Sequence record: ON287376.1 | Direction: 5' to 3' (one strand) | DNA: 64,000 nucleotides | In this document: positions 18,209 to 20,070 of the stretch, in pieces | Layout of the letters: each line of letters opens with the position of its first letter | Numbering within the stretch: the stretch's first letter is position 1 | Program-made: the position numbers and the translations under genes | The notes under the pieces: generated by a model | The model's database searches: none | Told to the model about the DNA's origin: nothing | The model's input: only the letters and a program-made list of their open reading frames with translations

Positions 18209-18276
18209 CGGAGCATAGGAGAGGGCATTTAGCCCTCTCTTTATTTTTTGTTTCATTGACAAATAAGGAGATCGCT

Positions 18277-18804
18277 TTGTCTATTATTCTTTATCACAAG
18301 GGTGTTATTGCTGCTGACTCAAGAGGGATTATTGATCAGGGGAAATACACAGAGCGTTTGTGCGGTATGCTCAAGTTATTCTCATTCGGCGGGAAAGTCG
18401 TTATGGGGATGGTTGGCGATAACACGACCATTGACTGGGCGTGTAAAGAGTTCTTTTATTTCAGTGAGAAAGTCATTGAAATGGAGGAGGGGGATTTAGA
18501 TACGCTTCCATTATCTAAAGACATCCTGGAACGGTACGGTATGGAAGACTCTACTCGTACGCTTTGCTTCATGACACGTAGACACCATTACTACGTCGGG
18601 GTGACGGGTATCATACGCTGGGAGAAAGGTATCCCGTGGGCAGCTGGTAACGGGATGCGTACTGCTCTGCAATCGTTATCTAACGGATTCGATGTAGAGG
18701 CTTCGGTGCGCAATGCCATATTGATGAATCCTGATTGCGGTGGCACGGTAGTCATTCACCATGCTAAAGATCTGGAGCTTATCAAAAGGAAGAAATCTAA
18801 ATGA
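18277..18804 (+). CDS. Proteasome-beta/HslV-like Ntn hydrolase
   Basis: TTG start 6 nt after AAGGAG gives (M)SIILYHKGVIAADSR; downstream Lys (MLKLF), AAGNG and AV..A...NPDCGGTV match the Ntn peptidase pattern with Ser1 as nucleophile. Confidence 0.7.
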   Translation: MSIILYHKGVIAADSRGIIDQGKYTERLCGMLKLFSFGGKVVMGMVGDNTTIDWACKEFFYFSEKVIEMEEGDLDTLPLSKDILERYGMEDSTRTLCFMTRRHHYYVGVTGIIRWEKGIPWAAGNGMRTALQSLSNGFDVEASVRNAILMNPDCGGTVVIHHAKDLELIKRKKSK

Positions 18805-19280
18805 AAAACTTCGCAGCTTTCTACGATGATAAAGTCATCTTTAGTACGAAGATCCAAAAGAGTTCAGGGCTACCGACTACTCTTAGCTGGGATTCTCTAT
18901 TCACGCCACACGGATTCATTGTCCCCTACTCTCTAAGCTGTTTCGCTATCCTTGATATCATCGAAGACAACAAGGTTCCCGTTGATCGTTCCGGTGAAAT
19001 GCTAGGGATGCTCATTACTCCCGAGGGTAGGGTTTACGAGTATGCGGTAGGGAGTAACAACAAAGTTATCTGTAACCGTCTGGTAATCGGTAAAGGTTTC
19101 CGTCATTGCCGTTCTGCTGATTACCTTACTGAAGATACAATGAACTCTGCGATCCACTTAACAACCAGTCCAGAAGCAGCGTTGGATTGGTTCCACAAAA
19201 CTTTGCCGACATTCACTAACAGTTACTTCGTCATGGGTGTCGACGACATCGTAGCCAAGATTAAGGAAAAGGGTCTATGA
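18801..19280 (+). CDS. Probable catalytically inactive Ntn-fold paralog
   Basis: NFAAFYDDKVIFST parallels SIILYHKGVIAADS; AIHLTTSPEAALDW parallels the C-terminal helix pair; ATGA-coupled. Confidence 0.45.
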   Translation: MKNFAAFYDDKVIFSTKIQKSSGLPTTLSWDSLFTPHGFIVPYSLSCFAILDIIEDNKVPVDRSGEMLGMLITPEGRVYEYAVGSNNKVICNRLVIGKGFRHCRSADYLTEDTMNSAIHLTTSPEAALDWFHKTLPTFTNSYFVMGVDDIVAKIKEKGL

Positions 19281-19900
19281 ACGAAATAGAAAAAGATGAG
19301 GTTGTCACCAGCAGGCCTCCCGCTACTGATCGCGCTACGCTTTACGATGTACTGAACGTAGACATCAACAAAGCGGTACTCCGTGTGCGTGGTCGCGTTA
19401 CGCCGGTTGATGCAGCTAAACGGCTGTTGGCTTTGGTGGAAACTGCTAGAAGTAAATACTCGGGTGAACATTCGATCGATCTTCATGACGTTTCTGATCA
19501 TCGTTACATGATCATCGAACGTAATAACGACATCATTGAGTTCGGTGGCGTCGATACTACTAGTGACCGTGTCGCCTCAGTTAATCTGTCTTTAGAGGTT
19601 GCTATACTGGATCGCGGTATCGAATTCCTCACCAAGTTCATTGAGATAAAGTCTGCGGAAGTTGATCAGATTTTACTCGGCGGCGGCCGTGCTATTAGTT
19701 GCCCGGCTGTAATTGAGAAATACTTCGAAGCTGAAGAGATCGAACTCTTACGCGATGAGTCTGAGTTACCTCAACTAAAGATGTTTAAACCTAAGGGGAT
19801 GAACATCCCAGGGAACAACCGATCCATCCACAACAAAGTTAAACCAGGGAAATTCTTCAACAAAAACAGGAACTTCCGTTCTTCTGGTCGGGGCAGATAA
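19277..19900 (+). CDS. Hypothetical protein with basic C-terminal tail
   Basis: 207 aa ending KFFNKNRNFRSSGRGR; double terminator downstream. Confidence 0.7.
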   Translation: MNEIEKDEVVTSRPPATDRATLYDVLNVDINKAVLRVRGRVTPVDAAKRLLALVETARSKYSGEHSIDLHDVSDHRYMIIERNNDIIEFGGVDTTSDRVASVNLSLEVAILDRGIEFLTKFIEIKSAEVDQILLGGGRAISCPAVIEKYFEAEEIELLRDESELPQLKMFKPKGMNIPGNNRSIHNKVKPGKFFNKNRNFRSSGRGR

Positions 19901-20070
19901 TTTCCCCTTGATTCTATGATTCCGGGAAGTAAGCAGTACAAATAATCCCTCCCTTTTGGGAGGGATTCTTAAGAGGGTCGTCCCTCTTTTTTTGTTCCCT
20001 TATTTTTTCAAATACTCTTTAAATAGTTTAGTAACAACTAGACTATCACCCCTCCTTTAAGGAATAAACC

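Follow-up and report, generated by a model that had tools for sequence, protein, structure and literature searches.

An overlapping jumbo-phage gene pair for a predicted HslV-like peptidase and a putatively inactive protein of related fold

The DNA analyzed in this work, referred to below as the window, is a stretch of 64,000 nucleotides from the record ON287376 of the Serratia jumbo phage vB_SmaM-Kodama (275 kb, Moabitevirus). It contains two overlapping genes, designated gene 1 and gene 2, whose products are best explained, with a probability that we place somewhat above even, as the catalytic and the dead subunit of a proteasome-like peptidase. The assignment of gene 1 to the HslV peptidase family is already known, and the new elements are the predicted fold and dead active site of the gene 2 product as well as the strict pairing of the two genes. 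An earlier note, made from the letters of the window only, had proposed an active hydrolase coupled to a dead paralog. The features that it had listed, namely the TTG codon, the spacing of the AAGGAG motif, the N-terminal Ser, the Lys, the GNG and DCGG elements and the ATGA overlap, were all found at the positions given there.

The HslV-like product of gene 1 and its start codon

The product of gene 1 matched the PHROG family phrog_1040, "peptidase HslV family", over its full length (E 7.8e-22). Its AlphaFold2 model, which had a predicted local distance difference test (pLDDT) score of 88 and a predicted template modelling (pTM) score of 0.84, was an alpha-beta-beta-alpha sandwich, and a Foldseek search of the PDB with this model returned 440 chains at E <= 0.001. 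HslV was the best match (E 1.7e-7, probability 1.00), with the enzymes of Trypanosoma, Thermotoga, Staphylococcus, Bacillus, and E. coli at the top of the list, followed by BPH and 20S beta subunits, likewise with a probability of 1.00.

The residues expected at the active site were recovered as well. In an alignment of 18 homologs, which shared 14–57% identity with the window protein, Met1, Ser/Thr2, Tyr6, Asp14, Lys33, Gly47, and Gly124 were invariant, and the same N-terminus with Ser or Thr at position 2 was present in four further loci. Since position 2 swaps freely between Ser and Thr and never carries another residue, selection on a hydroxyl nucleophile can be argued. In a profile alignment to the HslV of S. 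aureus, Asp14 fell on the aspartate of the GDG motif and Lys33 on the lysine of the active site, and the GSG loop was matched by G124-N-G126. The GNG element thus corresponds to residues 124–126, and the DCGG element occupies residues 153–156. According to Fuchs et al. (2021, PMC8665760), the catalytic set of the proteasome type consists of Thr1/Ser1, Asp17, Lys33, and the oxyanion hole at Gly47.

The reading of gene 1 as a proteasome- or HslV-like N-terminal nucleophile (Ntn) hydrolase with an N-terminal Ser, put forward in the earlier note, was thus upheld by the phrog_1040 match, the Foldseek results, and the HslV alignment. Gene 1 very probably encodes an intact HslV-like Ntn peptidase of the kind already known, and its activity is predicted. 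Its resemblance to HslV (ClpQ) extends to the size of about 175 amino acids (aa), the alpha-beta-beta-alpha Ntn fold, the hydroxyl nucleophile directly after Met, the Asp/Lys/Gly set, and the GxG loop. In contrast to HslV, the first hairpin is shorter, and the Asp is located at position 14 rather than 17+1. Moreover, HslV is homomeric, whereas gene 1 is always paired with a relative that appears to be dead. In HslV of the CodW type from Bacillus, an N-terminal Ser can serve as the nucleophile.

The HslV relationship is reflected in the existing annotations. In Moabite, the homolog gp099 already carries the name "peptidase HslV family", and an attached HHpred note points to the T. maritima HslV structure 1M4Y. 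The same name is used in 2050HW and PhiEaH1, the AH06 homolog is called a "proteasome-like hydrolase", and the RAY-type homologs fall in PHROG 11389, "unknown function". A sequence search of the PDB with the gene 1 profile produced weak HslV matches amid noise. The top matches of this search were helical repeat proteins that had been designed de novo (4yxx, 8s6p, and others) and were rejected as an artefact of the helix-turn motif G-x-T-V-E-E-A-V that is repeated in such designs. The region concerned spans approximately residues 130–160 of the gene 1 product (18664–18756), where designed toroidal and tandem-repeat proteins outscored natural ones.

The N-terminal position of the Ser depends on the start codon. 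The TTG at 18277 lies 6 nucleotides past the AAGGAG motif, and the product translated from it begins with (M)SIILYHKGVIAADSR. The equivalent codon was ATG in all 11 homologs checked. In Totoro and at L017, a metagenomic locus, the aligned start comes directly after a stop codon, and in pEa_SNUABM_54 the stop lies one codon further away. The other candidate, the TTG at 18256, lies 6 nucleotides after the T-run of the terminator and is not preceded by a ribosome binding site. The ATG alignment and the upstream stops in the homologs therefore identify 18277 as the correct start, and a start at 18256, which would hide the Ser, was not borne out. The earlier note had presented 18277 as a newly moved start; this was mistaken, as it is already the deposited start of the coding sequence in Kodama and Moabite.

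In three other phages, the deposited starts lie 6–7 residues ahead of the Met-Ser/Thr, namely RAY gp56 (L003:1956-2504), AH06_60 (L005:1950-2501), and PhiEaH1 gp117 (L004:1945-2508), where the L numbers designate the loci of our collection. A GGAGG motif is found just before the internal ATG-Ser/Thr in RAY and AH06. The annotated gene 1 starts of RAY, AH06, and PhiEaH1 are probably too long and would mask the N-terminal nucleophile.

Methionine aminopeptidase is expected, based on its specificity, to remove Met in front of Ser or Thr. In the proposed mechanism, gene 1 would be translated from the TTG at 18277, and methionine aminopeptidase would expose the Ser as the N-terminal nucleophile. 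The Ser would then act together with Asp14, Lys33, and the oxyanion hole at Gly47, as in HslV and the 20S beta subunits.

A predicted Ntn fold lacking catalytic residues in gene 2

The product of gene 2 matched phrog_8172, a PHROG without assigned function, with an E-value of 2e-64, and it was annotated as a hypothetical protein in every record seen. Word-index protein searches gave only 4–9 relatives, and an exhaustive HMMER search was required to obtain the family, which comprised 101 cluster representatives at E <= 1e-3, with lengths of 156–212 aa in almost every case. The AlphaFold2 model built from this 101-sequence alignment reached a pLDDT of 95.9 and a pTM of 0.90.

A Foldseek search of the PDB with this model gave weak matches led by proteasome subunits (best E 0.056). 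The model was additionally compared with 48,161 chains using VIA-align, a search independent of Foldseek, which listed 50 chains at Z >= 5. The top 48 of these 50 matches listed were Ntn hydrolases, each aligning 120–150 of the 159 residues. Among the best were 20S beta subunits (Z 7.5 and 7.2), T. maritima HslV (7.2), Anbu (6.8), BPH (6.5 and 6.2), and connectase (6.2 and 6.0), all of which are middling scores; a Z below 8 may reflect a common arrangement. Acid ceramidase, NAAA, TANGO2, penicillin acylases, and bile-salt hydrolases followed lower in the list. In the VIA-align superpositions, residue 3 of gene 2 was aligned to catalytic residue 1 in more than 10 mature enzymes. The Ntn fold of gene 2 was accepted because the match list was homogeneous and the register constant, and not on the strength of one outstanding match.

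Other resources gave related results. The shape search of the ESM-Atlas returned TANGO2 and peptidase C45/CBAH clusters with a template modelling score of 0.60 over 147–149 residues. The BFVD matches included a "proteasome subunit beta" of a Caulobacter phage, and structural relatives were found there in the Ralstonia phages RSF1 and RP12 and in the Erwinia phages Derbicus and Huxley. In a language-model comparison, PF00227 was present in 48 of the 100 nearest clusters, which we treat as a lead only.

The residues that make gene 1 a candidate enzyme are missing from gene 2. Asn3 occupies the nucleophile position, and the N-termini of the family are mixed (MSN, MKN, MAN, MII, MLI, and others). 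No Ser, Thr, or Cys, no Asp, no Lys, and no Gly was conserved at the catalytic positions across the family. The family instead conserves residues of its own, namely F14, T35, G38, P42, D52, G76, R93, G97, G99, R104, E111, and Y142. The AlphaFold2 model, the VIA-align results, and the family alignment thus agree with the earlier claim of an Ntn- or proteasome-like fold without a nucleophile, and a non-Ntn fold was not borne out. Gene 2 is likely to encode a previously unannotated, catalytically dead Ntn-fold protein, as judged from the predicted model.

The secondary-structure elements of the gene 2 model follow the order of those in gene 1, minus one helix between the two halves. Comparison of the two sequences by BLASTP gave no signal, and shallow profiles of nine sequences gave none either (0.8%). 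With the 101-sequence profile of gene 2, hhalign paired residues 91–169 of gene 1 with residues 64–153 of gene 2 (probability 70.9%, P 3.8e-5). With the 18-sequence profile of gene 1, the probability was 66.5% (P 5.4e-5), and the GNG element landed on G97-K-G99 of gene 2. The alignment covers only the C-terminal halves, in a topologically equivalent register. The description of gene 2 as a paralog in the earlier note was therefore sustained in part: the shared fold and the hhalign probabilities of 67–71% speak for it, whereas the signal is limited to the C-terminal half and is absent from BLASTP and the shallow profiles. Common descent of the two genes is moderately supported. In the proposed mechanism, gene 2 would be a very divergent relative in which the same alpha-beta-beta-alpha sandwich may persist and from which the nucleophile and the rest of the catalytic set have disappeared.

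In 20S proteasomes, the alpha subunits are inactive, and inactive beta subunits occur in eukaryotes and some archaea. The phage genes resemble this system in that a presumably inactive protein is encoded next to an active one of the same fold, and gene 2 matched the 20S beta subunits best. Unlike the 20S alpha subunits, gene 2 has no N-terminal gating helix (H0), residue 4 being already the first of strand 1, and its scores with alpha chains (Z 5.0–5.8) were lower than those with beta subunits and HslV (Z 7–7.5). A further difference from the 20S subunits is the missing helix between the halves of the sheet. We infer that the closest analogy for gene 2 would be such an inactive beta subunit, rather than a true alpha subunit. 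The PPH proteins, which have about 140 aa, lack helix H2 according to Fuchs et al. (2021, PMC8665760), and the gene 2 model has no helix at that place.

Strict gene pairing and a possible two-subunit complex

The TGA stop codon of gene 1 and the ATG of gene 2 overlap in an ATGA at 18801–18804. The conservation of this arrangement was followed at 18 places, comprising the window, Totoro, PhiEaH1, RAY, AH06, pEa_SNUABM_54, and 12 metagenomic loci that span the E-value range of the gene 2 family. One place, L024, looks like the pEa_SNUABM_54 locus again, as judged by the N-terminus and length of its gene 1 and by the lengths of the flanking genes, which leaves about 17 separate places. A gene of 165–209 aa was located directly upstream of the gene 2 homolog on the same strand at all 18 places. 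In most cases, it overlapped the start of gene 2 by 1–26 nucleotides or abutted it, and the largest gap was 12 nucleotides. The encoded upstream protein started with Met-Ser/Thr and carried the Asp and the Lys wherever the N-terminus could be read (16 of 16 places). All nine scanned proteins of the gene 1 type, including those of the window, Totoro, PhiEaH1, and AH06, matched phrog_1040 or phrog_11389, and several matched both.

Among cultured phages, the pair was detectable by sequence in Moabitevirus, Agricanvirus, Iapetusvirus, and pEa_SNUABM_54. The genes downstream of the pair vary, while the pair itself stays fixed. One scan of viral contigs for related loci returned no relatives. The co-occurrence of the two genes across jumbo-phage lineages, which the earlier note had offered for checking, was thus confirmed at 18 of 18 places.

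Based on these observations, the products of genes 1 and 2 are proposed to be the two subunits of a proteasome-like peptidase of the phage. The ATGA overlap would couple their translation and might yield nearly equimolar amounts of the two products. Because the pairing is strict and the genes overlap, the gene 2 product may co-assemble with the peptidase as a non-catalytic subunit and influence how the particle is put together, how it is gated, or which substrates it takes. That the two products act as one complex is a proposition drawn from gene arrangement, to which we give slightly better than even odds. An alpha/beta-like stacked architecture, as suggested in the earlier note, appears doubtful.

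A number of observations weigh against a two-subunit peptidase. The gene 1 product had no match in Pfam, including PF00227, or in NCBIfam, including its HslV model, even at E 10 or E 1, in which it differs from HslV itself; its family assignment consequently rests on the PHROGs, the structure model, and the residues of the active site. Within the GSG loop, Asn replaces the equivalent of Ser129. For gene 2, neither Pfam nor NCBIfam contained a matching family, phmmer and profile searches of the PDB found no solved protein with a sequence match, and the model matched no AlphaFold DB fold cluster. The middling Z scores given above belong to the same side. Prediction of a 1:1 complex from the proteins' own alignments gave values of 0.26 and 0.21 relative to a mark of 0.32, which are below the mark and count neither for nor against binding. 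An HslU gene was found neither next to gene 1 nor in the genome of the close relative 2050HW, which contained no match to PF07724 (AAA_2, HslU-type) and no homolog of the RAY protein gp116. Finally, tight synteny of phage genes can reflect shared regulation instead of a complex.

Some of these observations would also fit a different explanation, in which gene 1 would suffice by itself as an HslV-like peptidase of homomeric build, perhaps with the HslU of the host as its motor, and gene 2 has a separate role, either as a decoy or inhibitor of the host HslU or HslV rings or as a regulator holding the phage peptidase off. HslV, BPH, and Anbu are each built from a single kind of subunit, as stated by Fuchs et al. 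(2021, PMC8665760). The complex prediction remained below the mark, the lack of an own HslU in Moabitevirus (2050HW searched) makes an interplay with the host HslUV plausible, and the polar residues that gene 2 conserves (T35, D52, R93, R104, and E111) are its own and not those of the Ntn set. However, a decoy aimed at the host would need no overlap with an active phage peptidase, yet all 18 places, spread over very divergent lineages, keep this arrangement, and gene 2 is no nearer to bacterial HslV than to other Ntn folds. We therefore consider a homomeric gene 1 with a separate gene 2 unlikely, and continue to favor the catalytic and dead subunits of one peptidase.

A more radical objection is that the Ntn likeness of gene 2 is convergent or an artefact of modelling, with the adjacency of the genes being an inherited order within a conserved jumbo-phage block. 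The best structural scores were modest (Z 7.5 and a Foldseek E of 0.056), a meaningful Pfam match was absent from all 101 aligned members of the family, and the first shallow profile comparison with gene 1 was empty. The neighborhood is in part syntenic, with a DNA ligase gene near the pair in both Moabite and L024. These points are outweighed by the homogeneous list of full-length matches, in which more than 10 independent enzymes share one register at the N-terminus, by the very confident model from the 101-sequence alignment, and by the deeper profiles, which gave P values of about 4e-5 with the gene 1 family. The downstream flanks vary around the fixed pair, which likewise argues against inherited order. 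We accordingly regard convergence or an artefact as very improbable, and retain the reading of gene 2 as a dead subunit.

Proteasome-like genes in Caudovirales phages have been described before, and the available text of Fuchs, Alva and Lupas (2021, PMC8665760) catalogs PPH, AAH, CPH, BPH, Anbu, and connectase, of which PPH, AAH, and CPH are the homologs on record for phages. These homologs keep their catalytic center, and that text mentions no active/dead pair, where the comparison with genes 1 and 2 is one of descriptions only. HslV genes without HslU have also been reported in a study of Salmonella jumbo phages (PMC7823757). A description of an active/dead proteasome-like pair in phages was not found in the literature, the coverage of which was incomplete, so that this is no proof of novelty.

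If the proposed reading is true, the phage module would be a second, viral, and independently evolved instance of the division of proteasome-type particles into catalytic and non-catalytic subunits. To our knowledge, this division is so far known only from 20S proteasomes. The module would also be a compact system of two proteins (175 and 159 aa) for studying how an inactive subunit controls assembly, gating, and specificity. PHROG 8172, which together with its metagenomic relatives amounts to about 100 clusters annotated as hypothetical, would gain a fold and a testable role. The pair may further bear on the remodelling of host and phage proteomes by nucleus-forming jumbo phages, and an anti-defence or deconjugase role, as the earlier note had suggested, is one that we can only infer.

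Neighboring genes and candidate partners

The features surrounding the pair are listed in Table 1. The stretch from 17.4 to 20.0 kb is 98–99% identical to the corresponding DNA of Moabite, 2050HW, Haymo, Yaphecito, BUCT660, and the Pectobacterium phage vB_ParM-25. Gene 2 and the following gene 3 overlap in the same manner as genes 1 and 2, with an ATGA at 19277–19280, and the unit of genes 1, 2, and 3 is bracketed by the two terminator-like hairpins with T-runs (18217–18241 and 19971–19988).

Table 1. Features of the window around genes 1 and 2, with loci of homologs of the small upstream gene
Feature	Coordinates	Strand	Basis or remark
Small upstream gene, 99 aa	17909..18208	+	Homologs of 89–120 aa directly upstream of gene 1 homologs
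Terminator-like hairpin and T-run between the small gene and gene 1	18217..18250	+	10-bp stem with 6 GC pairs, then TATTTTTTGT; terminator annotated there in Moabite
Shine-Dalgarno motif AAGGAG	18265..18270	+	Read from the sequence, 6 nucleotides before TTG; ribosome binding site annotated in Moabite
Gene 1, HslV/proteasome-beta-like Ntn hydrolase (predicted), 175 aa	18277..18804	+	phrog_1040, structure model, catalytic residues
Gene 2, putatively dead Ntn/proteasome-like fold, 159 aa, phrog_8172	18801..19280	+	Structure model, no catalytic residues
Gene 3, 207 aa, lineage-specific, basic C-terminal tail	19277..19900	+	In the operon, outside the conserved module
Terminator-like hairpin and T-run closing the three-gene unit	19971..19996	+	Terminator annotated there in Moabite
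Homologs of the small upstream gene	L003:1634-1927, L004:1562-1906, L009:2124-2405, L011:2118-2402, L014:1562-1852, L021-L024		

A homolog of the small gene upstream of gene 1 was present in every sequenced locus examined, as established by blastp links and alignment. In the small protein, a beta-rich part carrying the motif YFDxxG precedes a variable linker, after which, 6–9 residues before the C-terminus, comes an invariant Gly with Ser, Ala, or Cys behind it. The tail often holds Cys or basic residues. It matched no Pfam family, and a weak PDB profile match to the PepSY-like structure 3due (E 0.014) is a lead only. The protein could be a regulator, a docking adaptor, or a substrate of the peptidase. 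Docking adaptors are usually laid out in this way, with a flexible linker between the globular part and a conserved peptide at the C-terminus, and a specific substrate could be built likewise. As a tentative extension of the two-subunit reading, the module might form a heteromeric phage proteasome-like particle, in which the dead subunit is perhaps an ancient duplicate and the small protein serves as regulator, docking adaptor, or substrate via its Gly-Ser/Ala/Cys tail.

The same tail admits another explanation, according to which the module would not degrade proteins in bulk and would instead process or ligate them in a sequence-specific manner. A connectase-like gene 1 product would act at or near the C-terminal Gly-Ser/Ala/Cys site of the small protein, with gene 2 as a scaffold. 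In favor of this, no sequenced locus examined has the pair without the small gene, and the motif after the linker has an invariant Gly followed by Ser, Ala, or Cys. Connectase, which is among the structural matches of gene 2, is a monomeric proteasome homolog that recognizes a short motif, as described in PMC8665760. Nevertheless, gene 1 is structurally nearest to HslV and BPH and not to connectase, and the small gene is set apart from the pair by a hairpin terminator. Its C-terminal motif might just as well serve for docking, for binding a metal, or as a redox site. A processing enzyme is thus very improbable in our view, and the proteasome-like peptidase of two subunits remains the preferred interpretation.

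The hairpin between the small gene and gene 1 was noted in the window and in the homologous loci L003, L005, L009, L011, L014, and L017. In 6 of 12 loci, a TATG follows directly after the GC-rich hairpin, about 10–25 nucleotides before the start codon, where the window has TTTATT instead. This TATG resembles the motif reported for the late promoters of phiKZ-type phages.

Candidate unfoldases were sought among the ATPases of the pair-bearing phages. RAY, which has been described as a nucleus-forming Erwinia phage (bioRxiv 10.1101/2023.02.24.529968), encodes an HslU-type AAA_2 ATPase, gp116 (NC_041973.1 86352-88061, L026), which was reported to be nucleus-localized and is located far from the pair gp56/gp57. 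Since 2050HW has no gp116 homolog, the pair persists without a phage HslU. An AAA ATPase of 383–390 aa is encoded just downstream of the pair at L014:3043-4194, where it overlaps the end of gene 2, and at L011:4546-5718, and the two proteins share 41% identity. It was rejected as a conserved partner, being a member of a widespread phage ATPase family with no homolog in Moabitevirus. The sole AAA protein of 2050HW was likewise rejected, as it is of the phiKZ gp286 type, has its gene at a distance of 29 kb, and does not occur in RAY. With no candidate common to the pair-bearing phages, the idea of a conserved ATPase partner was dropped, and any unfoldase needed in this phage would have to be that of the host.

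Gene 3 had been named in the earlier note as a possible partner of the pair. In tblastn searches, it was found in Moabitevirus genomes only, and other genes occupy its position elsewhere, so a role as a conserved partner could not be maintained. It matched no family, had no neighbors in the Atlas, and showed no similarity to the genes that follow the pair in other loci. A match to SigX4 (E 0.0065, 15.7 bits relative to a cut-off of 323) was dismissed as noise. The last approximately 25 residues of its product are strongly basic and rich in Gly and Arg. Gene 3 is far more conserved than the genes beside it, with 83% identity between Kodama and Totoro compared with only about 50% for genes 1 and 2.

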